IMG/VR virus record: IMGVR_UViG_3300036770_006893
Coordinates: 1 to 64,000 of that record
DNA length: 64,000 nucleotides
Direction: 5' to 3' (one strand)
The translations under genes and the position numbers were made by a program. This document shows, piece after piece, positions 25,865 to 48,557 of the stretch; positions within the stretch are counted from its first letter, which is position 1; every line of letters starts with the position of its first letter. The notes under the pieces were generated by a model. The model ran no database searches. It saw only the letters and a program-made list of their open reading frames with translations, and had not been told where the DNA came from.

Positions 25865-26125
25865 TTTCGTGCTGATAAAAAACCTTGTCTACATTAGGAT
25901 CGTATGCCATTAAGCAATATTGTATCGGATGATTCGTTTTTGTCAACTCCTGTTTTTCCTCTAAAGCAGGAAGTTTAATCTCACCCTTTTGATAATCCTT
26001 TACACCATTATATGCGAATCCTAAAATAGCAATAATAACCCCTATCCATTGCAGCATAACTGTTCTCCTTGCTGATTGTTTTTGCTCGTCCATGAGCATA
26101 ATATCGGCGGCTGGACTGAAAAACT

Positions 26126-26710
26126 TTAGTCATGATCAGAATATCTGCCTGCACACTTATCACAAAAGCATTCGAAATCTTCCGCTCCATCCCAACATAC
26201 TTCTGGAAATCGCTCGTCTGCTTCTAGACTTTCAGCACCAAAGTCAATCGCTACAAGAATCTTCTTTTTATCACGCTTGACATATCCTAGGTTATATTCA
26301 TGGGCATCACGATAATAAATGCCATTATCCTCCATATCTCCGATCAGATCATTAATCTTTTCGTAGTTAGAACACCAATCACAGTTAGCACAATCTCCGT
26401 CGCAATCTATTGATTTACAACTATATGGACTAGCAATCTCTGTAAGATAACCCCAGTTACTTAGAACCATTTTTTCTTTTGACCTATACCCACCACGACC
26501 GTCAGACTCTGCGAAATAGTTCGGAATCCTAATGCGACACACTGGACTCAAAACCTTTGGAGCCATCATCGGAGATAAATGACTTTGTACAGCATGGGCG
26601 AAAGTAGCCAAACTTTTATTAGGAAAACCCTTAAATCCATAAGATTGATTTTTAACCTTATAGAAAGTATTCTGGCTACCACTATCAACATATTTTCCAA
26701 CGTATGCCAT
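26126..26710 (-). CDS. Protein kinase-like / phosphotransferase fold protein
   Basis: G-loop-like VDSGSQNTFY, Lys in YGFK, catalytic loop YRDAHEYN, DFG. Confidence 0.7.
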   Translation of the reverse strand: MAYVGKYVDSGSQNTFYKVKNQSYGFKGFPNKSLATFAHAVQSHLSPMMAPKVLSPVCRIRIPNYFAESDGRGGYRSKEKMVLSNWGYLTEIASPYSCKSIDCDGDCANCDWCSNYEKINDLIGDMEDNGIYYRDAHEYNLGYVKRDKKKILVAIDFGAESLEADERFPEVCWDGAEDFECFCDKCAGRYSDHD

Positions 26711-27316
26711 AACTTTTCTCCTTGTGTAGGCATTCTACAATAAGTTATCGGCTTGTCAACTAAGAAAATCCAGTAATCTTTTATGCCATTTTGGCAGTCG
26801 TGGCGGGCGGTCTGCCATTATGGCAGTCCCGCTTCTCTCTCATTAGCCTTATTGATAACCCTTTGTGTTTTAATAACTTGGGTCAATCGGTCAGCACTCT
26901 TATAGTCTCTCATGCCTCTCTCATCAACATAAAAATACTCATCTAGAACATCAAAATGATTAATGTCTTTAAAAACTTCGATAGCAGCATCTAGTGGACT
27001 ACTATTAGGAATGCTAACAATCTTTTCGACCGTATTACTTTTTACGTACCACTTACCCATCTGCTCAACTCCCCAAAGAGATTAGGATAGTATCATCATC
27101 GTCATGATTATTATAATCTAAACGACCAACAGTTATTTCGGCATCATCTAAAATATTTTCCAGTTGACTAGGACTAATAAGCGTATCATAGTTAGTACCA
27201 AAACTAATATCACTATTAGAAATAGCGTCCATCACACTACCCAAATCCAAACAGTTGTATTCACAAACATCTTGAATACTAACACACTTATATGTAAAAC
27301 TTTTCATATTATAATC

Positions 27317-28021
27317 CTAGTGAGCAGGAAAGAGAACATTAGCCAAACCGCGAACACACAAGTCGCATGATATACTATCTTTCGTGCCGGTGCAAGTGAT
27401 TTCCGACCGACCACGACGGATTTCGGGACACGTTACAAACTTGCTGCCGTTCAGTACCACAAGTTTCGGCAAGGCTTTCCGCCATGCTTCGGCCTTGACC
27501 TTGCTTTTGGGTCGCTTCGGTGCGATTTTCATATCACTATCACACCATGCAAACAACTTGAAACCCTGAGCCATAGCCTCGCCCATATCTTTATCGTCAT
27601 GGACACTAGCATATACATTCATATACTTTTCCAGACTAACAAGCCTATCATCATAAATATGAGTATAAAACCACATATCGGGCAGACTATCACCATCGGC
27701 CAGAATACTCTCACACGCCCATGTCCAGTTTGCCAAATAGTCTAAGTCTAGTTCACCATTTAGAAAAAAGTCGCCTCTTTCATGAACTCTAATACTTTTA
27801 TTTCTACGCTTTGCATCCAAAATCATAGCACGAATCTTATTCTTTTCTGTAACAAGATTCTGCATACCAGCAGGACGAACGCCCGGATAAATCTTTTCCG
27901 TCTGCTCTGCATAGCAGCCGTTTCCAAGATAATCACAATCCGATGGACAAGTATCTCCAACTGGCCTACTAACCACAACACAGTTTTTTCCCAGTTTATC
28001 GTTACCGTCTGCAACTTTCAT
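27317..28021 (-). CDS. Gp88-like Cys-rich protein (radical-SAM-related family)
   Basis: TCPSDC-x6-CYA and IRVHERGDF, WFYT motifs. Confidence 0.65.
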   Translation of the reverse strand: MKVADGNDKLGKNCVVVSRPVGDTCPSDCDYLGNGCYAEQTEKIYPGVRPAGMQNLVTEKNKIRAMILDAKRRNKSIRVHERGDFFLNGELDLDYLANWTWACESILADGDSLPDMWFYTHIYDDRLVSLEKYMNVYASVHDDKDMGEAMAQGFKLFAWCDSDMKIAPKRPKSKVKAEAWRKALPKLVVLNGSKFVTCPEIRRGRSEITCTGTKDSISCDLCVRGLANVLFPAH

Positions 28022-28200
28022 CGTGTTCTCCTTTTGCTCTAATGGATTCTACTATACGTTATCGGCTTGTCAACCTAAAAAATCCACAAAAAAACTCTGC
28101 CATTTTGGCAGGCCGCCCGCGATCTATGCCAATTTGGCAGGCAAATCTCCACGCCTTGCTAAGATTTGGTGTATCTCTATTATAACTATAAGGAGTTTAT

Positions 28201-28779
28201 ATGAAAAAGAACAAAACTAGCAAAGCTAAAATAGCTAATAATACTAAATGGGCTAATAAGAACCGCGACAAAGTTAAAGTATATAAGCAAAAATATAAAA
28301 ATAAAACTAAAGATTATAATAGATCATTAGTACAACAAATTAAAGAAAATAGCTCATGTAGTATTTGTGGCGAAACTAGATTCTATTGTTTAGATTTTCA
28401 TCATAGAGATCCATCTACAAAAAAAGATACTGTATGCAATTTAATACGGCATGGTTATTCTACACAAATCATTAAAGAAGAAATAGATAAATGCAATATT
28501 ATTTGTTCTAATTGCCATCGTAAAGAGCATACAAATACATACAAATATCTTACCAAAAAAGCTAGATATGTATTAGAACTAAAGGAAAAATCCTGTTGCT
28601 CTAAGTGCGGATTATCTATACCAGAATGCTTAGATTTCCATCATATTAACGATAATAAAACAGATGGTATAGGTGCTATGCTAAGAAATAAAAACTTTTT
28701 ATTAGAAGATATTAAAACTGAAATACAAAAATGTATAATAGTATGTTCTAACTGTCACAGAGAAATACATAATAAGTAA
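28201..28779 (+). CDS. HNH endonuclease-like protein with two tandem domains, opposite to the local orientation
   Basis: Two C..CG....CLDFHH...IICSNCHR repeats; abuts tRNA-Arg. Confidence 0.8.
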   Translation: MKKNKTSKAKIANNTKWANKNRDKVKVYKQKYKNKTKDYNRSLVQQIKENSSCSICGETRFYCLDFHHRDPSTKKDTVCNLIRHGYSTQIIKEEIDKCNIICSNCHRKEHTNTYKYLTKKARYVLELKEKSCCSKCGLSIPECLDFHHINDNKTDGIGAMLRNKNFLLEDIKTEIQKCIIVCSNCHREIHNK

Positions 28780-28780
28780 A

Positions 28781-28853
28781 TACTGCCGGAAGGATTTGCA
28801 CCCTCGTAAATCAACTTAGAAGGTTGATGCCTAATCTACTCGGCCACGGCAGC
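28781..28853 (-). tRNA. tRNA-Arg(TCT)
   Basis: TCAAC-CT TCT AA-GTTGA; GCTGCCG/CGGCAGT acceptor; T-loop TGCAAAT. Confidence 0.88.
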
Positions 28854-28919
28854 ATAAAAACCGATAGCCGCCAGTTCAACACTAGCGGTCTATCGGATAT
28901 TATAGCAGTTATGCTAGGC

Positions 28920-29189
28920 TCAGACAAGAACCTCCTCTTGCTTTTCCACCTTGCTGTTATGAGCATCGCCAGCAGCCTTAGCGGTTACACCAGTAACCCT
29001 AGCACGCCAGACCTTGTAACCCTGCTCGCTAAAAGCCTTGACTTCGCCAGCCTTGACATTAGCATGAACATCACCGGGCAGAGCATCACGCAGACACTCG
29101 CTAATCGAATCCACAACAACCTCACGGTCAAGATCGCCAGCCACAATATCAACAACAAAAGAAAACTTCTTCATGGTAAATCTCTCCAA
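28920..29189 (-). CDS. Hypothetical protein
   Basis: 89-aa ORF in the cassette behind the promoter at 29305-29332. Confidence 0.65.
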   Translation of the reverse strand: MERFTMKKFSFVVDIVAGDLDREVVVDSISECLRDALPGDVHANVKAGEVKAFSEQGYKVWRARVTGVTAKAAGDAHNSKVEKQEEVLV

Positions 29190-29441
29190 GTTAGTGTCAA
29201 TCGAACCAATAAAACAATCATATCACGCAATCATCACTTGTCAAGAGCCAATCCGAACTTTTTTGTTGTCGTGATCGGTTGGCGTCTTGTCGTGTGATGC
29301 TATCATTGTACCACTGTTATCGTCACTGTCAAGCCGCTTGCTGAATCTTTTTTTGGATTTTTCGTAAGTGTATGCTGCTACAGAGGTTACGTCATATCTG
29401 TCATTTTGGCAGTTCGGCCGCGGTGCCTGCCGCTTTGGCAG

Positions 29442-29810
29442 TTATGAGAGATAACCCTCACAACCCAAAGAGGTCAGGTCACGCAGCAGATTTTCCGCCA
29501 TCTCAGCATTTTTGAGAGTGATGCTGTTGGTGTGGTGAGTAGCAGGAACGAACCTGTCGCCCTTCCAGCCGCCAACCAGATCATCAGTCCAATCCTTCGA
29601 CTCCTTCAAACCCCAGCCCGTATACTGGCGAATAATCTTGATGCAAGGAATACGATTATCCAAACTCATACCATTCGTGATCGTAACAGTACAACGCTGG
29701 TTCACACCCAACGCAACCTCAACAGCCTGCGTGATACGCTCTCTAATGTTCTCCCTAGCATAAAAAGCAAGTTCCATAGCCTCACGAACGCTCATTTCCA
29801 ACTTGATCAT
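29442..29810 (-). CDS. Ribosomal protein L7/L12 C-terminal-domain-like protein
   Basis: RIPCIKIIRQYTGWGLKESKD parallels the bL12 KVAVIKAVR..TGLGLKEAKD motif; ends AE.L...L...G.E. Confidence 0.7.
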   Translation of the reverse strand: MIKLEMSVREAMELAFYARENIRERITQAVEVALGVNQRCTVTITNGMSLDNRIPCIKIIRQYTGWGLKESKDWTDDLVGGWKGDRFVPATHHTNSITLKNAEMAENLLRDLTSLGCEGYLS

Positions 29811-30289
29811 ATAGCAAAACTTTCTGTATATTTAGGTTCGATTTCGTAAATACCGTCAAAACTACCGTTACGCTCTTCTAGAATATAAACTTGCTTACCA
29901 TCAGTAATCAAGGTGTCATATTCTGTTCCATCCCAAACGAACTCGTTATTGTCGCTTTCTCGTCGCCAATGCGGGTCACGAATAGGATTATAAAACAACT
30001 TTTCAAGATTGTCAACAGGCAACCGTGGAAAAAAACTTTTCCTTAGCATAACCTCTTCACATCTTACCCAACCACTAACATCATGCACACCAGCCTCGTA
30101 TACCTGTTTAGCCTTATTGGGCCGGTTCCACAATATACAACCCCTCATTTCCAACTGGTATTCTTTCGGGTCGTGGTAATATACATCAACAGTCTTACCA
30201 CCCTGCTTAACTTTCACTTGCCAGTGCATATAATGTTCACCGTTAGACAAATGAAATCGAACTTCGGCGTGTAGTGGTTTCGTTTTCAT
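29807..30289 (-). CDS. Hypothetical protein
   Basis: 160-aa ORF immediately downstream of the promoter at 30296-30324. Confidence 0.7.
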   Translation of the reverse strand: MKTKPLHAEVRFHLSNGEHYMHWQVKVKQGGKTVDVYYHDPKEYQLEMRGCILWNRPNKAKQVYEAGVHDVSGWVRCEEVMLRKSFFPRLPVDNLEKLFYNPIRDPHWRRESDNNEFVWDGTEYDTLITDGKQVYILEERNGSFDGIYEIEPKYTESFAI

Positions 30290-31554
30290 GCTTCTAGTAT
30301 ACCTTATCGACCAACTCTTGTCAAGACCTTTAAACTTTCGCTGACTACAGCCACCCCAGCCAAATCCGAAGGATTAGGAAAAACAATGTCGGCTTCCGCC
30401 ATACTCGACCAGCATTTCAGATAGCCTCTTTTGATATCATTGTGGCTATCCCCGTCCATTGTTTCCTTAAGTATACCATTAGTATCGGCACTGTCAATAC
30501 CAATCTATAAGAAAAATATTCTGCCATTTTGGCAGTTGCGCCGCGGCTCCTGCCGTTTTGGCAGCTAGGAGTTTTTATGCACTAGATCAATATACTTTTC
30601 TACTAGTTCGTAGGTATCAATCTGGTGAATGTTTATTAATTCTTTAGCCTTAGTAATGGATGCTTTATTCATGGCATTCATACGAGAGTTAAAGAAGTTG
30701 ATGATATAAACCATAGCCTGATCCTTAGTCATATTTTTAGGATCAGTACCGAGCAAGTCGCTAAAGTTTTTAGCCATTATTATTCCTCATGAAATCCCCA
30801 ACGGCCACTATCGCCCCAAACCTCTCTACTTTTAGGATAATCGTCAGGATAATCTCTTGCAGAACCGTCAGCATTAACCGGCCTACGTGGCCTAGTCATT
30901 TCAGGATTGTATGGCATCCACCACGGAGTATCCATACGATCTACAACCCCCAAAGATTCTTTACAATAGATGATATGATGGCTCACCGGATCGTCAGGAG
31001 AATACTTATACTGACCAAACCACACACCAATATACTTACCATAATAGTAGATAAGTTGTCCATCTTCTGGTTGACGATCAAAAAAACTAATCCATTCCAT
31101 TACCAACCCTCCGGCATAGGAATATCACCAAGATACATATAATATGCAACTTCATTAGCATCAAGAGTTTCCCAACCGCTATTGTGATAACCCCAAGAGG
31201 AACCATCCCAATATAGTTCACTAGGCTTGTTATTGCCAATAATAGCACAGAGATAATAGCCTATATCAATAGGTTGTCCACTTCGCCATTCCATTATTTA
31301 CCCCTCGTAATAATCACACACTTTGTACCCTTATCCTCATCAGTATACCTAAGACACTCATGAGACCCATAATACCAAACATCATTCTTAGAAAAGTTGA
31401 ATATAATCTCTTCCGTATGAAGTTGAGTATCATCATACCCACCCTCATAACCCAGAGTCAATACCCTCATATCCCCAGGATAATCCTTCAACTGCTCAAT
31501 CAGTTCGTTAACTGTCATGTTTGCATTCTACCCTATAGTTATCGTCATGTCAAT

Positions 31555-31965
31555 AAGAAAAAACCAGCGGAACCTTTTACGCCCCAGTTCCTATAACCCA
31601 TACGATTGCCCCTTGTCAGGATCGGATGGAAACCGCCCACGGAAACCTTCCTAGGATTGGTCATGACTCAATCCGTCTGGCTCTTGGGGACGATTACTGG
31701 TTGTGTTGTAAACCAGCGAGTCATTTACGATCCGACTCTTAACCGTCCACGCCATGCAGGGCTTTTAACCCCGTCTTACAGGTATATTCACGGTTACTGG
31801 TTGTATTAGAGCGTGGACAGGGATTCGCACCCCATTAGATTGGTATACTATCCTAACGTATAACCCCGTTAGGCAACCCCACGCTGCATAACAGCCGTAG
31901 GTTTATCGTACAGGTTATCCCAATCTAGTCGCTAGACCCACGCAAGTTTGTTTTGGTTTACTCAA
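31555..31965 (-). ncRNA. Candidate ~400-nt structured RNA with a tRNA-like domain (31810-31885)
   Basis: No credible minus-strand ORF despite its own strong promoter (31968-31995); AGCGTGG/CCACGCT stem closing GGG-TGCGAAT-CCC; further stems. Confidence 0.45.
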
Positions 31966-32075
31966 TCATTCTACAATCTAGTATCGTCTTGTCAAGAGAA
32001 AAAATCCACAAAAAAATGTCTGCCACTTTGGCAGATTTCGCGGCCCCTCTGCCGTTATGGCAGGCGGGGTTTTCT

Positions 32076-32558
32076 TTAGGCCTCTATTTCGTCTTCAGAA
32101 AAAAAGTTCTCTAAATCGAACTCGTTCCAAATAGCCATAGGAATCATATCCTTGCTGGTATATTCGATATAGTTATCAAAACCATTATCATAAATACCAC
32201 AGAAAGCCATGCCCGGCTCAAAATAGGACGCCTTTACATTGTATCCCAACTCTATCAGTTTCTCATACAATCCGATAGGGGGCGACCAAGCAGAGTCAAA
32301 TGTACCACTAACCTGATTACCAACCCTAGTAGCCTTTAGCCCATAATACTCTTCTTTATCTGTACCAATATCGGCCCCAATGTCCCACTTGGTTCCCCAG
32401 TTATTCACACAAAAATCCCACCAACCATCCCCAATATCTTCCGGCATGGGAATAAACTCATTACAAGTCTCACCTCTATTATAAGCCGCCTCAAAACGAT
32501 CAACCATAGCAGGATCGCTATGTTCAACAGTCAGATTGTTCAAGCACCAGTTTGGCAC
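32076..32558 (-). CDS. DUF1281/YubB ferredoxin-like domain protein
   Basis: MPNWC.N, NWGTKWD, FDSAWSPP, EPGMAFCG signatures. Confidence 0.8.
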   Translation of the reverse strand: MPNWCLNNLTVEHSDPAMVDRFEAAYNRGETCNEFIPMPEDIGDGWWDFCVNNWGTKWDIGADIGTDKEEYYGLKATRVGNQVSGTFDSAWSPPIGLYEKLIELGYNVKASYFEPGMAFCGIYDNGFDNYIEYTSKDMIPMAIWNEFDLENFFSEDEIEA

Positions 32559-32753
32559 AAATCACCTATCTTTCTATTCAGTTGGCACTAGGAGAGGGAA
32601 GTTTACGCTCATTGCAAATCATAACAGTATCGGCAATCATGTCAATACCAGCAGAAATAAGATTATACTGATCGTCTGGTTTCATATCAGTCATAGCGGT
32701 ATGAATCACACAAACAGCAAACTGTTCCAGAATCTGAGTCAACTCGTTTTTCG

Positions 32754-33302
32754 TCATGCTGCTCTCCTTTTTTTATCGGTTGTCAATCCCAAAAAACTAT
32801 ACAAATCTTGTCCAATCATCTTGCTATGTTTGCCGTGGTATATAGAGTACCCTTCTCGACCTCTTTTCAACTCACCATTACAGATTCTAGCATATACGGC
32901 TCGCTTAGTCAAGATACGAAAATCCACATTATACGGTGTCACATATACCAAAACCAGTCGATCAAAACACTCTGGTTTTACCCCAGGAAAGGTATAGGTG
33001 TAATAAACCTGTCCCCTACGAGTCGCGCGTTTTTCTGCCAAACTACTTTTGACTTCGATTTTTTCAGTACCGGCCCACAGATCACACCTTTGATTCGTTC
33101 CACCCTTCTTAGCCATATCATAGCCAGCATAACCAAATAGGGTCATGACTAGAGCCTCTGTATTATCGCTACGCTCAGTTTTGCTCTGAGTGCATAAATC
33201 ATAAGAAACATCGTTCTGCTCTGGACTATAATAATCATAATCCTTAGCATACATCTCTTTTACCAACTTCTTAGCCTTATGGAGATCCTTCAGCGTAAGC
33301 AT
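32754..33302 (-). CDS. Putative PD-(D/E)xK nuclease-fold protein
   Basis: RCDL...KIEVKSS motif followed by a hydrophobic strand (FDRLVLVYV). Confidence 0.55.
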   Translation of the reverse strand: MLTLKDLHKAKKLVKEMYAKDYDYYSPEQNDVSYDLCTQSKTERSDNTEALVMTLFGYAGYDMAKKGGTNQRCDLWAGTEKIEVKSSLAEKRATRRGQVYYTYTFPGVKPECFDRLVLVYVTPYNVDFRILTKRAVYARICNGELKRGREGYSIYHGKHSKMIGQDLYSFLGLTTDKKRRAA

Positions 33303-33477
33303 CTCTTTACTCCTTAGAACCGTACCAGATATATCGGCATTTTATCAGCCGTTCGCCACTTGTCAATAAAAACTTTGACAAAATATAACTGTCATTTTGG
33401 CAGATTGGGCGCAAAAACTGTCATTTTGGCTGACAACACCCATGCCGCCCGAATCCGAAGGATTAGCAGGAACAGAA

Positions 33478-33550
33478 TAGCGCCACGGAGGATCGAACTC
33501 CGATCTCCGGGATGAAAGCCCGGTATACTAAACCATTATACTATGGCGCC
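33478..33550 (-). tRNA. tRNA-Glu(TTC)
   Basis: CCGGG-CT TTC AT-CCCGG; GGCGCCA/TGGCGCT acceptor; TTCGATC T-loop. Confidence 0.9.
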
Positions 33551-33826
33551 ATATCTAACAGGCTATTTTTTCAATCCAAATATAACTACCATACTTTTCT
33601 TGAGCACGACGCAACGCATCAGTTTCGCTCATAGCAACAACATAACCAACAAAACGATTATTTTGGAAAACTCTCCAAGAATAATCAGCATAACAGTCGA
33701 TGTTTGTAGCAATCATATGTTTATTGTATCGGTTCCTATACGACTGTCAAGAGAGAAAAAATACTGCCATTTTGACAGAAATCGCGGCCCGCCTGCCATT
33801 ATGGCAGAGCGTTTGGCTCAACCCTC

Positions 33827-35632: not shown

Positions 35633-36255
35633 CTTATTATCCCTTCGGGTGAAAAAGAACAATCAAACCATACACACAGTATAAAGCCACAGCGGCGATT
35701 GTCAATAGGGTGTTCACTGAACATTCCCCCAAAATGGATCGTCCGCTGGAACAAACTCATCCACAATCCCGACTACTTCGGCCCAATCCCAAAAATCGGT
35801 CATGTTCTCCGGATCGTCAATCGGCTCGACCATAGGTTCAATCGTACCCTCGTCGGCCAGTTGATTCAGAATAGCGTTGATCGCGTCCGTATCGTCGAGC
35901 AGAGCCATCATTCGAGGAAACTGGTTCATGGTCATTTCTCCGTTGGGATGATACGCTGATTCTACAATAGAATATCGGCTTGTCAACTAAAAAAATCCAC
36001 AAAAATATCTCTGCCATTTTGGCAGTCCGGCCGCGGAAACTGCCATATTGGCAGCCCCTTGTTCAGTTTATAATGTAGGTAATATAACAACCCACAATAA
36101 AAGAAAAACTCAACAGAATATAATCCGCTTTATTCATCTTTTTCACTTATAGGAAAAATAAACTCACAAATACTATAAACACAAATACCACCAATAACAA
36201 ATCCAGCAAAGAATACTCCCCAGTTTACATATTCGGCCATCCCTAGCCCCTTTCT

Positions 36256-36795: not shown

Positions 36796-39464
36796 TTTCT
36801 ACTCCAAAGAAAGCAACCAAACCATACCACCCAATATCCATCCTGTCAATACTAAACTAATAACTTCCATTATTTTATCCAACTTGCCACATAACACCCA
36901 AACCCGAAGCAAGCCATTATAGCAGATAGTTCGCAAACAGTCAATACCATTTTACCCTCGTTTTTCGCTGACTATAGCCCACCTTGCCAATCCGATAGGA
37001 TCGGATGATACAATCACTTGGCGTGAATAAAAACTTTTTTACTAACGGTCTGATTTGTTACAGTAACAATCCAGTTTTTACCGCTACCATCCTCACGCAT
37101 GATACTATTGATAATACCAACGTGAACATTCCCCCTAGGATCAAACACGCTACCATACTTTCCCGTACGCATAGCGGCCATAATCTTATCTAGACTATTC
37201 ATCACGACACCCCCATCCAAGCGGCATTTTCCACACAATAAAGATAGAACATATCGTTCAACACCTCTCGATAGTTAGTATCGGTCAGCAGACGACGGTC
37301 CCGAGTAGACTCACACTCAGCATACAACCCACCGTCAGGAGTTGCAAGTAGAGTGATATTATGGCTCTCGCTGCCCCAAATCTGAGTCAGAGCATCTTTG
37401 ATTTTGTTGATTCCCATTTTCTTTTCCTCGCTGCTAGGTATATCGGTATTCTACAGGGTGAACCTTGAATGTCAAATAAAAAAATCAGAAAAATATTCGG
37501 CTGCCATTTTGGCAGATTTTGCGGCCCGGCTGCCATTTTGGCAGTATCAAAATCCCTTATGATGCTCTACCAGCATATGTAACATAATCTTTTCTGTTAT
37601 CATAACCGTGATACCTATAAGTAGGTTCACACATAAACGCTAATACATCCTTCATTTTATCAAAAGTGTAAGTCGCATGTGTAACTTTACTACGCAGCAC
37701 ATACTTTACAATCTGGCAATCAAAGTGCAGATTATAGTTATCCGCTTCGGCTTTGTTCTCAATATCAACCAATCTGGATCTCATATTATCACTCTACAGA
37801 AAAAGTAACAAGATTATTCACAAGTACGCTCTTAACCAACCTATTATCCTGTTGGATAACAACCATTTCACCCTTATCAGGATCGGTAGAGGGCCAACTC
37901 CAAACGTCGATAATAACACCAGTAAAGATACGGCCATCCTTACGTTGACAAGTAAAATGCTTGTTATAGTGTTCACGCATACTCATATTACTATTCCTTT
38001 CAACCAAACTCTTCATACTCTTCATCACTCAAATACGGCTCATTTGGACGGTAGCAGTTATAACTACCATAATGATCCGCATTAGTTTCATAATCACACT
38101 CTCGACCGCAACGCGAGCAAGTAGGTTCGTAATCAACAATATCAACCCTAACACCGCAACAGTTACTATTCATCTTTCAACCAATCACAAACAACGGAAT
38201 GTAAACAAACAAGTAAGCCCAAAAACCAACCAGAAAACCTACCAGACTCAGACCACTAATCATACCAAAAGTATCGGTATCGTGGCCGAACAGATTGTAA
38301 CAAATCCACTTTTTCATTGTGAATACTTTCCAGCGAGAAATCCGAGACAAAACACGATATTCAGAATCGGTAAAACTAGCACAAAAAATATAAAACCAGC
38401 ACGATACATTTTCTTTCTCTCCTGACTATTCTACCAGACTTTTTCTACTTGTCAACCCCTCAAAGCGGGGGGACTACTCTTGAACTTGAACTTTGATTGA
38501 ATGTGAAGTTCATCCATCACGAACGTGACAGCATCGTAAAGGATTCCACGGAAAACGTAATACTTCATTCGCATATCAAACAGTTTGACCGTACCATCCT
38601 CTTGCGGGTGGACAGTGAAACCAGCATCATAAGCGTAACGATTGAAACGACCAGTGATCGTGGAACGGGCTGGCATTGGCTTGATTTTCATTTTCTTTCT
38701 CTCTTTCTCTACTGACTATTCTACCAGACTTTTCTGCCCCGTAAACCCCCATCATGAGGGGTAGATGGTTTCCAGGGTCTTACGATTTTCGTCGATTCGC
38801 ACGATAGCCAAATCGTACTGGTAAAGGCTAGACTTGGTAGCAGATCGATAGGCTACAGTAGCCTCTTCGAGCGTAGCGTACACGTTGGACTGAACAAAAC
38901 CATCAAAACGCAAAGCAAACATTCTCAACTCTCTTTCTTTCTCTTTCTCTTTCTCTTTATATCGACATTATACCAAGCCCAACTTGAATGTCAAACAAAA
39001 AAATCGGTCGAAAAAAAGTTTTTTGTGGCATGATATTTGCTAGTAGCAAACCGCGTACCAAAAAAGTTTGGCACGATATTTGCTGACGCTGCCATTTTGG
39101 CAGGCCGCGCGCGATTTCTGCCATTTTGGCAGCGTATTCTCGCTGGCTACTGCCATTATGTCAGCCGATAGGATCGGCTGTTACAACCCCCTCTCAGTAG
39201 GGGTGTCCGTATGCGTCCAGCCCCTTAGGGTATCGCTTGTCAAAATCTTCTACCCTGACGCAATAATCGTTCAGTTTCTGGTAGAAAGTATCTGCAGAGC
39301 GAAGCAAAACATTTTCGGGATGATTGTTGATTCGTAAGAAAAATCCACCACCCCCCGATGGAGTGATATCAAACCGTACATCATCATCCATCATTTCATA
39401 GATAGCGTCGATGATTTCCTGAGCCGTAACGATTGAACCGATCATTTTTTGGGTTCCTTTCTTT

Positions 39465-39776
39465 TCAGTGGGTAATAACTTCGCGATTGTATGTATACGT
39501 CCACCACACTTCGCACTCTTCAAGATAGATCGACCGATAGGTGGGGCTAGGGTCGCGAGGATAATACCATTCAATCGTGACCAGCGTACCCTTAGGATAA
39601 GCCGCAACCTTGACGATATTTCCGGCGTAACCCTTCCCGTTATGCTTGACGCACTCGAAACCCTTATTTACGGCAACCGTGCCGAACTTGTCGCAACGCA
39701 TTTCCATTTCCGTTTCCATTTTCATTTCTCCCTTGTGATGATTAGATCCTACATTAGATGTCGGCATTGTCAACAA
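39465..39776 (-). CDS. Small beta-rich protein, paralog of 41434-41688
   Basis: ECVKHNGKGYAGNIVKVAAYPKGTLVTI...YRSIYLEEC; start probably 39725. Confidence 0.7.
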   Translation of the reverse strand: MLTMPTSNVGSNHHKGEMKMETEMEMRCDKFGTVAVNKGFECVKHNGKGYAGNIVKVAAYPKGTLVTIEWYYPRDPSPTYRSIYLEECEVWWTYTYNREVITH

Positions 39777-40215
39777 AAAAAATCACTCGATTTCAACCGA
39801 CGTCCATTCCTGGCAATCTGGGCAAATCACGACGATATCATCGACCGGGTCGCTTGGGCAAGGTACATCAACCGGGCAGCCGCAGCACTGCGAGATATAT
39901 TCAACATCATCAAACATTTTCAATCTCCCTTTTCCTTTTCACTTATCCTACATAGTGTATCGGCATTGTCAAAAAAAAGAAATAGAGAAATCGTTGGTGA
40001 AGTTTTCCCCACAAAAATATTTTCGTTTGGCATGATATTTGCTGGGGGCAGTTTGGCATGAGATTTGCTGTGCCTGCCATTTTGGCAGAAAACGCGGCCC
40101 ATCTGCCGTTTTGGCAGTCATATCTCGCTGGCTACTGCCATTATGTCAGCCGATAGGATCGGCTAGTACAACCCCTCCGAAGAGGGGAGTACCAACCAAC
40201 CCTACCTTTGGGGGG

Positions 40216-40395
40216 TTAGGCAAAATCTTCCTCGCCCTGAAAATCGTCGAGCCACTCATCATCCGTGTCGATCCAATCCTCATCATCTCCCATGATCGGA
40301 TCCCAACCGGTAGCATCCGTCACGAGCCACTCGCGACCATCCTCGTCCGTCATGCTGTCGGCCACAATCCGCTCAAAATCGTGAAGCATTTTCAT
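40216..40395 (-). CDS. 59-aa acidic protein (below the track cutoff)
   Basis: MKMLHDFERIVADSMTDEDGREWLV...WLDDFQGEEDFA; paralog of 41969-42130. Confidence 0.75.
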   Translation of the reverse strand: MKMLHDFERIVADSMTDEDGREWLVTDATGWDPIMGDDEDWIDTDDEWLDDFQGEEDFA

Positions 40396-41433
40396 TTCCT
40401 TTATTATCGGGTCAACAGAACAGCAATCGCCAACGATTTCCGATCATAGCAGCCATAGATGCCGCCGTCAATCAGAATCGTCCAGAATCCGTGTCGAGTT
40501 GGATGCGGGATAACTTTCATGCTCATATTCTACAATATATAATCGTCAAGTCAAATAAAAAAAATGAGAAGAAAAAATATTTTGTTTTGGCACGATATTT
40601 GCTGACGCTGCCATTTTGGCAGGCCGCGGGCGATTTCTGCCATTTTGGCAGTCCCTCCCCCATAATGGGGGAGAACATATGTATACCCTACCGATAGGGG
40701 GTCAATCCCCCAAATAACTTTCCATAAAATCAACATACCAGCACATAAAAGCCTTCCCCGCCTCATGTACGGTATATGAAACAAAAGCCGACACTACGAT
40801 ACAGGCGAACAGTATAGAAAAATCGTTCATTCTCAACCCTCCCAAGCAAACGGAGAAACTTCCTCACCCATAGCGGCGATAGCATCATACTGTGACCGCA
40901 AAGCCTCTACACGCTCCCGACTACCCGGCTTGCCAACCTTGATAATCATCGTATCCTCACCCCCACTATAGCGGGGGTCAACCTTCTCCACCTTCTCGAC
41001 TGCGGTTTCCCGCATAGCCTTACGATTGAACTTCAAAACCTTCTCACTGCGAATCGTGCCGCCATCGGCGGTACTCTTGTCGCAAGGGATTGCCAGACCC
41101 ACGAAGCACAGATACGCTTGACGCTTGGCGTTTTCAATAATCGGAAACATTTTGGATACCCTTAGTGGTGAAGTGAAAAACTTATTTGCAGGAAACAACA
41201 ACGAACCCGACAGGATTGCATACGCTCAACTTGTCGGCATCAACTTGGGCAGACTCCCGACTATTATATACCTTGCCGGGTTCGACACCAGCACAAGCAC
41301 ACGTTTCGGGCTGACTGTAGGCGTTGAGGGGTGTGGCCCCTTCATACGCTCGCGAACTTTTCATAATGATGAACATGACCACTTTCCTTCTGACTTGATC
41401 CTACCAAACTTTTCCAGACTATTCAACCCCCTC

Positions 41434-41688
41434 TCAATAGGGGGCTGGCTCGCCAGCATACCAGACCTTGCAATCTTCAAGGTAGATCGACCGATGCGAC
41501 ATCGGCATTTCACCGACACTATACATCCGACCATCATTTTCCAGAGGCTCGGCGTATGCAATCGTGACCAGCGTACCGCGAGGATATGCGGCAACCTTGA
41601 CGATATGGCCAGCGTAATGCTTGCCGTTCAACTTCTCACACTCAAAATCGAAACCAACTTGAACCGTTCCGAACTTGCTCATCTTCAA
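41434..41688 (-). CDS. Small beta-rich protein, paralog of 39465-39776
   Basis: ECEKLNGKHYAGHIVKVAAYPRGTLVTI...HRSIYLEDC. Confidence 0.7.
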   Translation of the reverse strand: MKMSKFGTVQVGFDFECEKLNGKHYAGHIVKVAAYPRGTLVTIAYAEPLENDGRMYSVGEMPMSHRSIYLEDCKVWYAGEPAPY

Positions 41689-41968
41689 CTCTCCTGTGGT
41701 GATGCTTTGATTCTACATTAGGTATCGGCATTTGCAAGAAAAAAAAATAGTCGAAAAAAAAGATTTTTTGGCACAAGATTTGCTGTTGCCATATTGGCAG
41801 AGCGTTTGGCACAAGATTTGCTGTAACTGCCATTTTGGCAGATTTCGCGCGATTTCTGCCATTTTGGCAGGTTGCCTCTTCTGCCGTTTTGGCAGTCGCT
41901 AACCGCCCGGTTTGGGTGGTACAATCCCCCATTGGGGGGATAGTTTGGTTTCCCTACCTTTGGGGGAG

Positions 41969-42130
41969 TTATGCGAACTCCTCTTCCCCGTAAACGTCCC
42001 AGTCTGCATCTTCTTCGTAGTCGATATATTCTTCCTCGTCGTCCCAATCTACCCCAGCATATCCAACCAGCCAATCTTTCCCATCTTCGCAAGTCATGCT
42101 ATCCGCGATAATCCTTTCAAACTCGCTCAT
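41969..42130 (-). CDS. 53-aa acidic protein (below the track cutoff)
   Basis: MSEFERIIADSMTCEDGKDWLV...DWDVYGEEEFA. Confidence 0.75.
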   Translation of the reverse strand: MSEFERIIADSMTCEDGKDWLVGYAGVDWDDEEEYIDYEEDADWDVYGEEEFA

Positions 42131-42399
42131 TTGGCATCCTCCGTTTGGGGGGTATTCTTCTTGGCCTGATCCTTACGCCATTGTTCCACAAACTTTACAT
42201 AATCGTCAACTTCACCGTAACGGTTATCCTTCTGGTAATCGTAACCGTCATCCGAACCGATGGGACGATAGGAAGAACGGTAGGAACGATAGTCGGAAGC
42301 GTAACGGCTAAACCTTTTCATCTTTTTCTCTCTTTCTTTCTCTCTTACTCTTATATCGGGATTCTACAATAGGATTCTTGAATGTCAACTAAAAAAAAA

Positions 42400-42639
42400 T
42401 CACGGAAGATACATATCGTTCACAACGTATCCGATTTCGTCGATTTCGATATATCCGCCATCGTCACAGAATCCGATTTCATCGTTGATTTCGATGCCAT
42501 TATCATTCTCACGAACACGGGCGAGCAGGTCGCCAGCGAAAGCCACGCGATTTACCAGTGTATCCAACGTGTTGTGATTCAGAAACTCGGTCAACTCGGC
42601 CACAGTATTCAGAACGATCAGGTTAGCAAACATTTTCAA
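42400..42639 (-). CDS. Hypothetical acidic protein, first gene of the leftward region
   Basis: Directly downstream of the promoter at 42660-42687. Confidence 0.7.
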   Translation of the reverse strand: MKMFANLIVLNTVAELTEFLNHNTLDTLVNRVAFAGDLLARVRENDNGIEINDEIGFCDDGGYIEIDEIGYVVNDMYLP

Positions 42640-43023
42640 CTCTCGCTTTCTTTCTCTCGATTATACAATAGAGTATCGGAATGTCAACAAAAAAAAATCA
42701 CAAAAAATCTCACTGGCGAAAACTTCACCGCCTCAGGTTTGGCACGAGATTTGCTACAGAGTTTCCCCACCTATGGGGGGTTTTTTCATTTTCCCTCTGA
42801 TGGGGGGTTTATCCCCCAAAAACCGCGGGTGGTCTAAACACAATAACCCCACCACAACCATTAAGTATCACCTAATCCTACAAGATGCAACCATAAGATT
42901 ATGTGTAGATTACAATATTATTGTGCGCAGACTCTAGAAGCTGATGTTACAGATTGTTAGATAAGCTATTATGGTTTTATTTTTTTTGTTACTATGGTGT
43001 ATTCCATATCAAGGAGAAATTTT

Positions 43024-45397: not shown

Positions 45398-46018
45398 ATG
45401 ACCAAAAAACCAAAGAAGAAAACAAATAAATTACCAAATAACGTAGATGAACAGGAATTCATAAGAGTATTAGACGTTATTAGTAAAAAACTAGGCCACA
45501 AATTTAAATTTGGCTATCATGATTTTGATGATATGAAACAGCAGGCCGCTATATTTGCTCTAGAGGGACTAGAGAAATATGACAATTCTAGACCACTAGA
45601 AAACTTTTTGTGGATCCATGTTAGAAATAGACTATTCAACTACAAAAGAAACAACTACCAGAGACCAGACAAACCCTGCTTAACTTGCCCCTTCTATGAC
45701 AAACACTATTCTTGCTCAAATAATCAATGCTCAGAGTTTAAAGATAAAACCGAATGCGAACTATATAATTCATGGTCATCAAGAAATGACGCCAAGAAAA
45801 ATATTATGCAACCATCTTATATTGATCACGACATACCAAACTCAAACAACTTACTAAACACTATACAAAACGAAGAAATAATAAAATTTTTGGACGAAAA
45901 TGTTAGCACAGAATACAGAGAGTCATATCTTAAGCTAAAACACGGAGACAAAATTCCCAAGCCACAACTAGTAAAACTTCAAAACTACATACTGTTACTA
46001 ATGAAAAATTTTGAGTAA
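45398..46018 (+). CDS. Phage RNA polymerase sigma factor (sigma70 region 2-like)
   Basis: DDMKQQAAIFALEGLEKYDNSRPLENFLWIHVRNRLFN matches the region 2 pattern; Cys-rich insert follows. Confidence 0.75.
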   Translation: MTKKPKKKTNKLPNNVDEQEFIRVLDVISKKLGHKFKFGYHDFDDMKQQAAIFALEGLEKYDNSRPLENFLWIHVRNRLFNYKRNNYQRPDKPCLTCPFYDKHYSCSNNQCSEFKDKTECELYNSWSSRNDAKKNIMQPSYIDHDIPNSNNLLNTIQNEEIIKFLDENVSTEYRESYLKLKHGDKIPKPQLVKLQNYILLLMKNFE

Positions 46019-46839: not shown

Positions 46840-47838
46840 ATGAAAAAAACCGCATTAATCACAGGAATTACAGGTCAAGACGGATCATATTTGGCCCACC
46901 TACTCTTGCACAACAACTATAATGTTATTGGTTTATATAGACGATCTAGCACAGATAATTTTCACAGAATAAATGACATAAATAGTCCAAATTTTGTCTT
47001 AGAAGAATTTGATCTAACAGATAGTAGCGGATGCTATAGAATTATAGAAAAATATCGTCCAGACGAATTATACAATTTGGCCGCTCAAAGTCATGTTGGT
47101 ACTAGTTTTAGTCAACCAATAACAACCTTTCAGATTGATACTATGGGACTACTGCACTTACTAGAAGCTGTTAGATCTTGCTCTAATCACACCAAAGTAT
47201 ATCAAGCTAGCACTAGCGAAATGTTTGGGTCTAATTATGACCAAAATGAAGCTCTTGGCAAATATCAAAATGAAAATACGGTTTTTTTGCCCCAAAGTCC
47301 GTATGCTGTGGCCAAATTGGCTAGTCATAGACTAATACAGATTTATCGCGAAGCTTATGGACTATTTGCATGTTCAGGCATCTTATTTAATCATGAGAGC
47401 CCAAAAAGAGGGTCTAATTTTGTTACTAGAAAAATTACATCATATATCGGTCAGCTTGTTAATAATAAAATTTCATCAGAAAATAAACTACACCTAGGCA
47501 ACATAGAAGCTCATAGAGATTGGGGACACGCTAAAGATTATGTTAAAGCCATGCACTTAATGATGCTTCAAGAACAACCTGACGACTTTGTTATAAGTAC
47601 GGGCTCAACTCATTCAGTAAAAGAATTTCTAGAAATTGCTTTTAATTTAGTCGGATTAAATTGGCAAGATTATGTTGTGATTGATCCACAATTTTATCGC
47701 CCTTGTGAAGTTGAATTTTTAAAGGGAGATAGCTCCAAAGCTAGAAGAGTATTATCTTGGGAGCCCAATATTTCTTTTCAGCATTTGGTGATAGAAATGG
47801 TTAACTCTGACATAGAGTATTATAAAAATGTTTCGTAA
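46840..47838 (+). CDS. gmd: GDP-mannose 4,6-dehydratase
   Basis: ALITGITGQDGSYLA, YNLAAQSHV, YQASTSEMFG, SPYAVAK, ILFNHESP, RDWGHAKDYV. Confidence 0.97.
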   Translation: MKKTALITGITGQDGSYLAHLLLHNNYNVIGLYRRSSTDNFHRINDINSPNFVLEEFDLTDSSGCYRIIEKYRPDELYNLAAQSHVGTSFSQPITTFQIDTMGLLHLLEAVRSCSNHTKVYQASTSEMFGSNYDQNEALGKYQNENTVFLPQSPYAVAKLASHRLIQIYREAYGLFACSGILFNHESPKRGSNFVTRKITSYIGQLVNNKISSENKLHLGNIEAHRDWGHAKDYVKAMHLMMLQEQPDDFVISTGSTHSVKEFLEIAFNLVGLNWQDYVVIDPQFYRPCEVEFLKGDSSKARRVLSWEPNISFQHLVIEMVNSDIEYYKNVS

Positions 47839-48103
47839 TTTTGATGACCCTCAATATAAGCAGTGGCGAAAAAAGGTTTATACTAGAGATAATTTTACTT
47901 GTCAATGGCCAGGTTGTGGAGATAAAAAAAAATTGAATGCGCATCATATTAAAACTTGGAGTGAGTATCCTTCTTTAAGGTTTGTGGTAGAAAACGGTAT
48001 TACTCTTTGTAGAAATCATCATAAAATGATAAAAAATCTTGAACATATTTATGAGGCTATTTTTTTTAAAATATTAGCGAACAAAAACAATGAAAAATCA
48101 TGA
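47828..48103 (+). CDS. HNH endonuclease (terminase-associated type)
   Basis: W...VYTRDNFTCQ..GC...LNAHHI...NGITLC..HH. Confidence 0.88.
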   Translation: MFRNFDDPQYKQWRKKVYTRDNFTCQWPGCGDKKKLNAHHIKTWSEYPSLRFVVENGITLCRNHHKMIKNLEHIYEAIFFKILANKNNEKS

Positions 48104-48557
48104 CTTTACTATCATAATAGATACCAGAGAGCAACAGCCCTGGATGTTTGATAATTATACCACAGCAAATAAAAAATTAGACACAGGAGACTACAGTATA
48201 GAAGGATTAGAGCATTTACTATGTATAGAACGAAAAAAGAGTGTTAGCGAATTTGCAAATAATATCATAGAATCTAGATTTAAAGATGTTATTATGCGAA
48301 TGAGTCAGCTTAAATATTCTTTTTTACTTCTCGAATTCGATCTAAAAGATGTATTAATATATCCTGTTGGTAGTACCGTACCTAAAAGAATGTGGGATAA
48401 AATTAAGATATCTCCAGCATTTTTAATGAAAAATCTTTTAGAGCTTCAATTAAATCACAATATAAAAGTAGTATTTTGTGGGAGCGCCAGTAATGCTGAA
48501 AAAATGGCAGAATATATTCTCAATAAGGTAAACTATATTGAAAAATTCAACAAATAA
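48090..48557 (+). CDS. ERCC4-domain nuclease
   Basis: IIIDTREQ, LDTGDYS, IERK motifs. Confidence 0.85.
   Translation: MKNHDFTIIIDTREQQPWMFDNYTTANKKLDTGDYSIEGLEHLLCIERKKSVSEFANNIIESRFKDVIMRMSQLKYSFLLLEFDLKDVLIYPVGSTVPKRMWDKIKISPAFLMKNLLELQLNHNIKVVFCGSASNAEKMAEYILNKVNYIEKFNK

Follow-up and report, generated by a model that had tools for sequence, protein, structure and literature searches.

What does a phage early control region gain from a dense cluster of sites resembling the -24/-12 boxes of the host's alternative sigma factor, sigma-54 (RpoN)? The question arises from the analysed window, a stretch of 64,000 nucleotides (positions 1 to 64,000 of the IMG/VR record IMGVR_UViG_3300036770_006893) from an uncultured giant phage. 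An earlier note, made from the sequence alone, had described eight plus-strand boxes with GG-N10-GC spacing and one head-to-head minus-strand copy, partly in tandem, between the leftward -35 hexamers and a palindromic element, Box A; it had read them as sites of non-productive RpoN binding that could titrate host RpoN-RNAP or repress the early promoters according to host nitrogen or stress state, and as implying an rpoN-positive host. The arrangement described in that note was confirmed (Table 1). The pattern TGGCAYRAKATTTGCT has eight exact plus-strand matches, whereas shuffled sequence gives none. The minus-strand copy has three mismatches to this narrow pattern, but only one to the generic sigma-54 consensus TGGCAC-N5-TTGCW; with this consensus and up to one mismatch the window yields ten hits against 1.5 expected, nine of them within 39026-42755, while the tenth, at 17486, lacks the GG, leaving no comparable site elsewhere in the window. 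The minus-strand copy is supported by relatives: the same composite of a box, 2-3 nt and an inverted box recurs in the related viral loci labelled L009, L013, L004 and L006, and four times in L200. The tandem pairs and the position between the -35 hexamers and Box A are also as described; the boxes occupy only the last five of about 18 cassettes, those nearest the strand switch.

Table 1. Positions of the sigma-54-type boxes and neighboring elements within the 64,000-nucleotide window.
Position	Strand	Feature	Sequence	Remarks
38967-38994	-	Consensus sigma-70-type early promoter	TTGACA, 16 nt, TATAAT	Back-to-back with the boxes
39026-39041	+	Sigma-54-type box	TGGCATGATATTTGCT	Promoter-proximal box, 31 nt from the -35 hexamer of the early promoter at 38967-38994
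39045-39060	-	Inverted sigma-54-type box	TGGTACGCGGTTTGCT	Convergent with the box at 39026, 3 nt gap
39069-39084	+	Sigma-54-type box	TGGCACGATATTTGCT	Exact match to the consensus; 4 nt before Box A
39089-39164		Box A palindromes	consensus CTGCCATTTTGGCAG	At 39089, 39118 and 39150; the first two are 29 nt apart with a GC-rich 14 nt spacer
39945-39972	-	Sigma-70-type early promoter	TTGACA, 16 nt, TAGGAT	
40028-40043	+	Sigma-54-type box		First of a tandem pair 26 nt apart
40054-40069	+	Sigma-54-type box		Second of the tandem pair; 4 nt before Box A
40074-40149		Box A palindromes		At 40074, 40103 and 40135
40527-40554	-	Sigma-70-type early promoter	TTGACT, 16 nt, TAGAAT	
40588-40603	+	Sigma-54-type box		Exact match to the consensus; 33 nt from the -35 hexamer and 4 nt before Box A
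40608-40651		Box A pair		At 40608 and 40637
41710-41737	-	Sigma-70-type early promoter	TTGCAA, 16 nt, TAGAAT	
41769-41784	+	Sigma-54-type box		First of a tandem pair 38 nt apart; a degenerate Box A at 41786-41800 lies between the two boxes
41807-41822	+	Sigma-54-type box		Second of the pair; 4 nt before a triple Box A
41827-41895		Box A palindromes		At 41827, 41856 and 41881
42660-42687	-	First early promoter of the leftward array	TTGACA, 16 nt, TATAAT	52 nt from the terminal box
42712-42870	+	Terminal module conserved in 7 relatives		In order: a small palindrome, the box, the hairpin with T run, further C/G hairpins, and a conserved block of about 25 nt
42740-42755	+	Terminal sigma-54-type box		No Box A; hairpin followed by a T run 9 nt downstream; 240 nt upstream of the first plus-strand late gene
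42763-42786	+	Hairpin followed by T6, terminator-like	CCCCACC-TAT-GGGGGG	Predicted sigma-54 start, 11 nt after TTGCT, falls on the first bases of the stem

The identification as sigma-54-type boxes rests on the consensus match, the rigid spacing and the pattern of tolerated variants. Five of the boxes match TGGCAC-N5-TTGCW perfectly, which is better than the established E. coli pspA promoter as read in this analysis. In more than 30 related viral loci, 122 of 139 TGGCA-to-TTGC pairs have N6 spacing and no other spacing exceeds four cases; among the 126 unique boxes the GG and GC never vary, and the variants that do occur (TGGTA, CGGCA, Y at -21, R at -20, W at -11) are those that sigma-54 tolerates. 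The boxes are also kept in register with their surroundings: the promoter-proximal box points away from the consensus sigma-70 early promoter and lies 31-33 nt from its -35 hexamer in 21 of 24 contexts, and the box next to Box A ends 3-5 nt before the first of two or three family-specific Box A palindromes. Here and in relatives they occur only in the cassettes nearest the strand switch; the genes of these cassettes have the most host-like codon usage, with a GC3 of 0.54 and CGN codons for arginine, in contrast to the late genes with a GC3 of 0.25 and AGA codons, and the phage tRNAs read A-ending codons. These cassettes are therefore probably the first expressed.

Whether the presumed binding factor is specific to this phage family or universal was addressed by searching other viral contigs for two or more such boxes within 35 nt. 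At least 120 other contigs carry such clusters, against 1 for a letter-permuted control pattern; 113 of these loci have no Box A, and they fall into about 30 protein-unlinked groups. Positions that the search did not force follow the sigma-54 consensus, with T at -27 in 0.66 and G at -20 in 0.70. A universal host factor is a more likely binder than the Box A protein, since the clusters occur in unrelated loci without Box A. The boxes are distinct from Box A: they carry Y where Box A carries G after TGGCA, and they occur in those loci that have no Box A. As a caveat, Box A shares TTTGGCA with the boxes in the same orientation, and this half of Box A is the more conserved one; some shared recognition is therefore not excluded.

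The interpretation offered in the earlier note is supported in part. Several features argue against ordinary productive promoters and for binding as such: tandem boxes overlap at 26-43 nt, including at a 26-29 nt period; convergent composites recur; about 20% of family boxes have the flipped orientation; no co-oriented gene follows the boxes; and no gene for an enhancer-binding protein (EBP) or RpoN was found in 403 kb of family loci plus a further 938 kb of sequence, although only about a third of the 224 kb phage genome was covered, so that a phage EBP may exist elsewhere. Purely non-productive binding is harder to reconcile with the observation that 80% of family boxes (107 of 134) point the same way, toward the late operon, and that a conserved plus-strand hairpin with a T run closes the array; neither would be necessary if only occupancy mattered.

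The reading preferred here, although tentatively and with less than even confidence, is that the nine elements are sigma-54 (RpoN) recognition boxes that form a conserved part of the immediate-early promoter cassettes of an uncultured jumbo siphophage family, and that they act first as high-affinity docking sites for host sigma-54 holoenzyme, an enzyme that forms stable closed complexes without an activator. A holoenzyme docked on the box would share the A/T-rich UP-like tract with the early promoter, and its body and melting region (-10 to +3) would lie over Box A; occupancy would tune the immediate-early cassettes by competing with the Box A-binding factor, for the shared upstream tract, or both. 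If an enhancer-binding ATPase is active, the boxes would fire rightward, antisense to the early genes and toward the late operon, and the conserved hairpin with T run would confine those transcripts. The sequence analysis itself establishes motif identity, conservation, spacing, register, location and independence from Box A; binding by host sigma-54 holoenzyme, the proposed competition and any firing are inferred from sequence alone, as is an rpoN-positive host, while the titration of host RpoN-RNAP and a link to nitrogen or stress state are no more than proposals of the earlier note, and the only RNA evidence consists of unstranded metatranscriptome contigs from relatives. Published work provides a precedent, in that sigma-54 holoenzyme binds in a transcriptionally inactive form and can repress promoters that its site overlaps; yet in the same study, intragenic sigma-54 sites in E. 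coli had no measurable roadblock effect (Bonocora et al. 2015, PMC4591121).

Among the alternatives, the most serious, although still unlikely, is that the boxes are productive, activator-dependent promoters forming a developmental switch: a phage or host EBP would make them fire rightward, convergent transcription and antisense RNA would shut off the immediate-early genes, the transcripts would either feed the late operon or stop at the terminal hairpin, and the Box A pairs and triplets would be the enhancer sites. The orientation bias, the confinement to the cassettes nearest the strand switch, and the conserved terminal box ahead of the first late gene, where the predicted start falls on the first stem bases in 6 of 7 relatives, are compatible with this view; so are the Box A sites, 15 bp palindromes in pairs 29 nt apart, with a third copy enriched in box-bearing cassettes (8 of 49 against 1 of 75). 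Paired palindromes about three helical turns apart are typical bEBP enhancers (NtrC, XylR), and FleQ is reported to act from sites just downstream of the promoter. However, no EBP was found in the window, in 20 kb to its right, in 403 kb of family loci, or in two collection scans; 13 of 17 Box A pairs in the window have no box; Box A overlaps -6 to +9 of the predicted promoter, a repressor-like position; tandem boxes 26 nt apart and convergent boxes 2-3 nt apart cannot all be used as promoters; no conserved co-oriented gene or RNA family lies downstream; and the hairpin with T run lies between the boxes and the late genes.

The remaining possibilities are less likely. The boxes could be operators for another DNA-binding protein, either a phage regulator recognizing TKGCW direct repeats 11 bp apart or the 35-37 bp palindromic composite, or the Box A-binding protein using the shared TTTGGCA. 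The convergent composite (a box, 2-5 nt, then an inverted box) is indeed a long palindrome of the kind that oligomeric regulators bind, and arrays with iteron-like periods exist, one of them (L278) flanking two DnaA boxes; but the identical bipartite consensus, including the unforced positions -27 and -20, occurs in the roughly 30 groups of loci with no detectable shared protein and GC from 0.31 to 0.64, a divergence across which a phage-encoded binder should not keep one specificity. The absence of Box A from those loci and the Y/G difference after TGGCA also count against this reading, and no RpoN-like DNA-binding protein is encoded nearby. Comparably doubtful is the titration idea of the earlier note in its global form, in which boxes on the replicated, many-copy genome would sequester sigma-54 or its holoenzyme and shut down the host sigma-54 regulon without any local role. 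Near-consensus, presumably high-affinity sites in dense clusters, orientation-independent arrays with a 26-29 nt period in many unrelated viral contigs, the absence of activator genes nearby, and the decoy function proposed for non-promoter sigma-54 sites (PMC4591121) are in its favor; but a pure sponge would not need the strict register with the -35 hexamer and Box A or the predominance of one orientation, there are only nine sites per genome, and no clear benefit of silencing the sigma-54 regulon is apparent. Finally, the boxes could be functionless copies spread by cassette duplication, since the cassettes are clearly paralogous and tandem modules 37-38 nt apart look like local duplications; this reading is strongly disfavored, as critical positions are invariant while the 5 nt spacer and the flanks vary across the 126 unique copies in diverged relatives, spacing is rigid, and the motif is clustered in unrelated viral contigs more than 100 times above a control.

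Comparison with individual systems places these features in context. Canonical sigma-54-dependent promoters such as glnAp2, pspA and nifH share the exact 10 nt between GG and GC, the extended consensus, and the T run before GC that is typical of strong closed-complex formers; the phage boxes differ in being stacked in tandem and convergently, in mostly pointing antisense to the neighboring genes, and in lacking an upstream enhancer at -80 to -150, a detected EBP gene and a co-oriented gene. The non-productive and intragenic sites of E. coli (PMC4591121) are bound in an inactive form, as is inferred for the phage boxes, and are likewise often not in front of genes and sometimes antisense, with conservation limited to the critical bases and with proposed decoy and repression roles; but they are scattered, single, mostly weaker and chromosomal, whereas the phage sites are consensus-grade, clustered, intergenic and in fixed register with a sigma-70 promoter and an operator-like palindrome. 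In pspF-pspA, whose layout was examined here, and in glnAp1/glnAp2 with NtrC, sigma-70 and sigma-54 promoters also lie back-to-back or in tandem, with paired palindromic regulator sites between or beside them that act on both; in the phage the palindromes lie immediately downstream of the sigma-54 box (-6 to +40), not upstream, and the unit is repeated in five successive cassettes. The early promoter arrays of T7 (A1-A3), T5 and the SPO1 host-takeover module resemble the phage cassettes in their many closely spaced small early genes, each with a near-consensus sigma-70 promoter and an A/T-rich upstream tract at one side of a strand switch; none of these is known to carry sigma-54 boxes or paired palindromes upstream of each promoter. 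NtcA sites in cyanophage genomes also embed binding sites for a host global regulator tied to nitrogen status in phage control regions, but NtcA is a CRP-family activator of sigma-70-type promoters, whereas the site considered here is for an alternative sigma factor that needs an ATPase to open DNA. In the lambda late control module pR'-tR', a promoter is followed almost at once by a terminator just ahead of a long late operon, matching the terminal box and hairpin with T run; yet pR' is a constitutive sigma-70 promoter with a Q-binding site and a 194 nt transcript, while here the predicted start lies on the hairpin itself and no antiterminator is known.

In the preferred view, the boxes would let host sigma-54 RNA polymerase modulate the immediate-early cassettes of this phage family, firing rightward only if an activator is present; together with the similar clusters in over a hundred other viral contigs, they suggest an undescribed way for phages to engage host RNA polymerase.

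The pattern described in the earlier note (TGGCAYRAKATTTGCT) has eight exact plus-strand matches in the window, whereas dinucleotide-preserving shuffles give none; the minus-strand copy (TGGTACGCGGTTTGCT) has three mismatches to this narrow pattern, but only one to the generic sigma-54 consensus TGGCAC-N5-TTGCW. With that consensus and up to one mismatch, the 64 kb window has ten hits against 1.5 expected; nine of them lie in 39026-42755, and the tenth lacks the GG. Five of the nine boxes match the consensus perfectly, a better agreement than that of the established Escherichia coli pspA promoter (TGGCACGCAAATTGTA), and four have one mismatch. All nine show the GG and GC dinucleotides separated by exactly 10 nt, and the extended consensus YTGGCACGr-N3-TTGCW is likewise represented. 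What the earlier note had observed, i.e., tandem pairs (26 and 38 nt apart), a head-to-head pair (with a 3 nt gap), and a position between the leftward -35 hexamers and the Box A palindromes, was confirmed in every detail.

The minus strand from about 42.7 kb leftward carries many small genes, and about 18 cassettes on it repeat a single plan. In plus-strand coordinates, a gene start is followed by a near-consensus sigma-70 promoter (TTGACA, 16-17 nt, TAKAAT), an A/T-rich tract, two Box A palindromes (CTGCCATTTTGGCAG) 29 nt apart with a GC-rich spacer, C/G hairpins, and the 3' end of the next gene. Only the five cassettes nearest the strand switch carry sigma-54-type boxes, which are inserted between the A/T tract and Box A. 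The minus-strand genes are real, since substitutions in relatives fall on third codon positions of the minus frame; ten small early proteins of the box-bearing cassettes were compared with PHROGs, which gave no function. To the right of the strand switch all genes are on the plus strand and are late genes, with terminase, portal and structural proteins. Box A itself is a 15 bp palindrome present in about 40 copies, in pairs exactly 29 nt apart whose 14 nt GC-rich spacer contains CGCGG; one pair lies upstream of nearly every early promoter, and the left arm varies (C4 to T, A6 to G) while the right arm is almost invariant. A block of about 50 nt, conserved in two cassettes and in relatives, holds a third Box A-like copy (CTGCCATTATGTCAG) and a 6 bp stem with a 3 nt loop (GCCGAT-AGG-ATCGGC). 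The spacer of the early promoters is itself conserved (TTGACA-n-GCCGATA...TGTAGAAT); GCCGATA resembles the sigma-28 -10 element, but the sigma-28 -35 element is absent. A sigma-28 -10 element, a Bacteroidota-type promoter (TTTG / TAnnTTTG) and a T4 MotA box were considered by eye and rejected for wrong spacing or incomplete match.

Coordinates of the features in the window and in other viral loci (positions without a prefix refer to the window; prefixes beginning with L denote individual viral loci)
Feature	Position	Strand	Remark
Sigma-54-type box	39026	+	start of exact match
Sigma-54-type box	39045-39060	-	inverted copy
Sigma-54-type box	39069	+	start of exact match
Sigma-54-type box	40028	+	start of exact match
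Sigma-54-type box	40054	+	start of exact match
Sigma-54-type box	40588	+	start of exact match
Sigma-54-type box	41769	+	start of exact match
Sigma-54-type box	41807	+	start of exact match
Sigma-54-type box	42740	+	start of exact match
Early cassettes	21.9 to 42.7 kb	-	about 18 repeats of one plan
Late genes	right of 42.99 kb	+
Box A palindromes	21890-41895		about 40 copies
Conserved block with third Box A-like copy	39133-39180 and 40118-40165
Conserved early-promoter spacers	35960-35990, 26740-26770, 39746-39773		examples
Small palindrome GGTGAA-n3-TTCACC	42712-42731 and 40003-40020		recurs in relatives
Phage tRNA genes	19552-33551		seven tRNAs
Possible sigma-70-family factor	45398-46018	+	206 residues
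Auxiliary genes of the late operon	46840-48557; L241:19051-19851
Mtd_N proteins	56702-58666 and 60888 onward; L241:10744-14430		654 and 1228 residues
Gene with PhageMin_Tail hit	L243:19430-20366		same phage, right of the window
Clustered boxes in other viral contigs	L291:7081-7292, L252:18-256, L254:12539-12706, L294:5746-6445		examples from viral loci L247-L359
Array with DnaA boxes	L278:1663-1855		seven sigma-54-type boxes
Boxes in inverted terminal repeats	L323:128-191 and 10570-10633		10.8 kb viral contig

Codon usage forms a steep gradient across the window. GC3 is 0.54 in the box-bearing cassettes, where 1 of 46 arginine codons is AGA; it is 0.36 in the cassettes at 22-33 kb that carry only Box A, with 24 of 92 AGA codons, and 0.25 in the late genes, with 121 of 173 (0.23-0.25 outside the two cassette groups), so that arginine codons switch from CGN to AGA. 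The seven phage tRNAs (Gly-TCC, Ser-ACT, Asn-GTT, Gln-TTG, Thr-TGT, Arg-TCT, Glu-TTC) read A-ending or AT-rich codons, mostly the former. It is inferred that the box-bearing cassettes are the first expressed and would be read by unmodified host machinery, and that an AT-rich phage infects a host of higher GC content. Searches bearing on the identity of this host yielded little: a motif scan of the genome contig collection gave no hits, the GDP-mannose dehydratase was only 52% identical to proteins of metagenome-assembled genomes, and a protein atlas returned viral taxa only.

No cultured phage matches; megablast and blastn searches of the region and a tblastn search of the portal found nothing, and the terminase is only about 25% identical to Bacillus siphophage terminases. 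Early in the late operon lies the gene for a protein with weak hits to Sigma70_r2 (Pfam, E 0.004) and to a PHROG sigma-factor family (E 5e-4), which may be a phage-encoded sigma-70-family factor for late genes. Auxiliary genes lie inside this operon: GDP-mannose 4,6-dehydratase, an HNH endonuclease and an ERCC4-type nuclease just before the terminase, and a sulfotransferase further right. Two large late proteins carry the N-terminal domain of the Bordetella phage major tropism determinant (Mtd_N); they could be receptor-binding proteins and perhaps targets of a diversity-generating retroelement. Walking rightward along the 194 kb JGI contig led to a called gene with a PhageMin_Tail hit that encodes 5179 residues, which would be an extraordinarily long tape-measure protein and implies a very long tail.

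A composite pattern of box plus Box A was found in 17 viral contigs, including the window's own 224 kb contig, and more than 30 loci hold Box A pairs. The family contains 126 unique TGGCA-N6-TTGC contexts, which do not count as independent evolutionary events since the cassettes are paralogous; their frequency matrix reads T-28, T-27, TGGCA, C/T-21, R-20, R-19, N, A-17, T-16, TTGC, T/A-11. Anchoring on one half alone recovers the other half at the exact spacing, the only variants being TGGTA and CGGCA; of 139 TGGCA-to-TTGC pairs, 122 have N6, and no other spacing exceeds 4. The box next to Box A ends 3-5 nt before it, and the promoter-proximal box starts 31-33 nt from the -35 hexamer in 21 of 24 unique contexts. 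Of 134 boxes, 107 point away from the early genes and 27 point with them. A composite of a box, 2-3 nt, and an inverted box recurs in several relatives; in the related locus L200 it lies between the Box A pair and the A/T tract. In each relative the boxes occupy only the three to five cassettes nearest a conserved terminal module, which holds a small palindrome, a box, about 9 nt, the hairpin CCCCACC-TAT-GGGGGG with a T run, further hairpins, and a conserved block of about 25 nt. The hairpin is a modest plus-strand terminator-like site (-8.6 kcal/mol, followed by T6), and the predicted sigma-54 start falls on its first stem bases in six of seven relatives. A small palindrome of the type GGTGAA-n3-TTCACC recurs just upstream of some boxes and of some Box A pairs; where it is present, the box-to-promoter distance grows by about 21 nt, or two helical turns.

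Clustered boxes are not confined to this family. A scan of all viral contigs for two generic boxes 5-35 nt apart returned at least 120 contigs, whereas a letter-permuted control pattern returned one. The 113 new loci contain no Box A; one of them, L328, is a false positive from a coding repeat, and the rest give 466 unique boxes, in which positions not forced by the search follow the sigma-54 consensus, with T at -27 in 0.66, G at -20 in 0.70, and R at -19. Preferred geometries are same-strand periods of 26-29, 36-37 and 46-47 nt, convergent offsets of 17-21 nt, and a divergent offset of 26 nt. The loci fall into about 30 groups with no detectable shared protein, and their GC content ranges from 0.31 to 0.64; the largest group comprises 80 loci with an SU10-like portal, and its array lies in the divergent region beside the packaging genes, a setting shared by many of the clusters. 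A search for cultured relatives of an array from another group found nothing. A general coupling of boxes to TTGACA hexamers was not seen in other phage groups; the 31-33 nt register is specific to this family. In locus L278 two perfect DnaA boxes (TGTGGATAA) sit in the middle of the array, which could be a replication origin or a DnaA-regulated control region; in locus L323 each inverted terminal repeat carries two boxes pointing inward, like early promoters at the ends of a protein-primed genome. Literature searches found no paper describing such arrays.

The same bipartite consensus with the same rigid spacing thus occurs in phage groups that share no detectable protein, which argues for a universal host factor; sigma-54 is, to our knowledge, the only one with this specificity, and sigma-54 holoenzyme from model bacteria recognizes the same consensus. 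Recognition by host sigma-54 holoenzyme is therefore considered rather likely, although it is inferred from sequence alone. The earlier note had named binding by the same factor as Box A as an outcome that would refute its reading; on the criteria of co-occurrence and shared recognition bases the boxes do not qualify as Box A operators, since the 113 other loci lack Box A, the terminal box in the window and in seven relatives has none, and the base after TGGCA is consistently Y in the boxes and G in Box A. As a caveat, boxes and Box A share TTTGGCA, and the right half of Box A (TTTGGCAG) has the same orientation as the boxes and is the more conserved half, which keeps the idea of a shared factor alive. 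The substitution pattern was rejected as evidence for a reading of Box A as a plus-strand RNA hairpin: substitutions are asymmetric, with 38 wobble-compatible on the plus strand against 9 on the minus strand, but there are no compensatory double changes, and the variants look inherited by cassette duplication. The boxes of the window do not correspond to replication-origin iterons, which would form a single cluster of direct repeats with DnaA boxes and an AT-rich unwinding region, bound by a phage initiator; they are spread over five promoter cassettes across 3.7 kb, each in register with a promoter. For other phages this reading is not excluded, given the DnaA boxes within the L278 array.

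No enhancer-binding ATPase (EBP; AAA+, GAFTGA family) or RpoN homologue turned up in the window (regular-expression, Pfam and local HMM and phmmer searches), in 20 kb to its right, in 403 kb of family loci, or in 938 kb around the arrays of other phages; two scans of the viral contig collection with PspF/NtrC peptide patterns, which have low sensitivity for divergent proteins, hit no family contig. These searches left out about two thirds of the phage genome, and a host EBP cannot be excluded; the Box A pairs look like enhancers, but lie downstream of the boxes. Other features are hard to reconcile with ordinary promoters: tandem boxes 26 nt apart and convergent boxes 2-3 nt apart cannot all be used, and Box A covers -6 to +9 of the predicted promoter. 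The neighboring genes are on the opposite strand, and an Rfam search found only tRNAs; the late operon is co-oriented but lies behind the hairpin with T run. Contigs from four metatranscriptome runs, all from relatives, are unstranded and end at repeated Box A sequences, so that they say nothing about transcript starts. Published work shows that sigma-54 holoenzyme typically sits on DNA in an inactive state and can repress promoters that its site overlaps; the same work found no roadblock effect for intragenic sites (PMC4591121). Yet the 80% orientation bias toward the late operon and the conserved plus-strand terminator-like hairpin suggest that direction matters, and that rightward transcription has to be stopped.

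A two-state reading is therefore adopted, tentatively and as somewhat less than an even bet. By default the boxes would dock host sigma-54 holoenzyme back-to-back with the immediate-early sigma-70 promoters; the holoenzyme would share the A/T-rich upstream tract and cover the first Box A, and would then compete with the putative family-specific Box A-binding factor, with the upstream contacts of the early promoter, or both. If an activator is available, the boxes would fire rightward, antisense to the early genes, and the terminal hairpin would confine those transcripts. The finding is real and more than chance, and its identification as sigma-54-type boxes is well supported by the sequence comparisons; binding by RpoN-containing RNA polymerase, the presence of rpoN in the host, the competition, and any firing are inferred. 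The functional inference of the earlier note, that tandem and convergent boxes pointing antisense to the genes fit non-productive binding better than promoters and could titrate host RpoN polymerase or repress early promoters according to host nitrogen or stress state, is only partly supported. Among the alternatives, an activator-driven early-to-late switch remains possible but unlikely; an operator for a protein other than sigma-54 is less likely, a global sigma-54 sponge slightly less likely again, and functionless duplication very improbable.

A more far-reaching possibility, not excluded although unlikely on present evidence, is that clustered consensus sigma-54 boxes are a widespread and so far undescribed phage device, in the form of tandem arrays with a 26-29 nt period, convergent palindromic composites, and boxes at strand switches or genome ends. 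Many unrelated phages would use them to capture host sigma-54 RNA polymerase, either as a sponge or boundary element, or for a transcription program opened by a non-canonical, non-AAA+ phage factor or by host activators that are switched on by infection or starvation; the nine boxes of the window would be one elaborated example, wired into immediate-early cassettes.

Sigma-54 is the one bacterial sigma factor that binds promoters tightly yet cannot start transcription without an ATPase, and as far as the searched literature shows, it plays no part in current models of lytic phage gene control. While the individual box is of the familiar -24/-12 type, the feature appears to belong to a broader, undescribed class of clustered sigma-54 boxes in phage control regions. 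This phage family places consensus boxes in strict register with the promoters inferred to be expressed first, and more than a hundred other viral contigs carry similar clusters without any activator gene found nearby; together, these observations suggest that phages engage host sigma-54 polymerase in a way not yet described, with possible roles as a brake or timer on early genes, a link to host nutritional state, a decoy, or a new route to open sigma-54 complexes.
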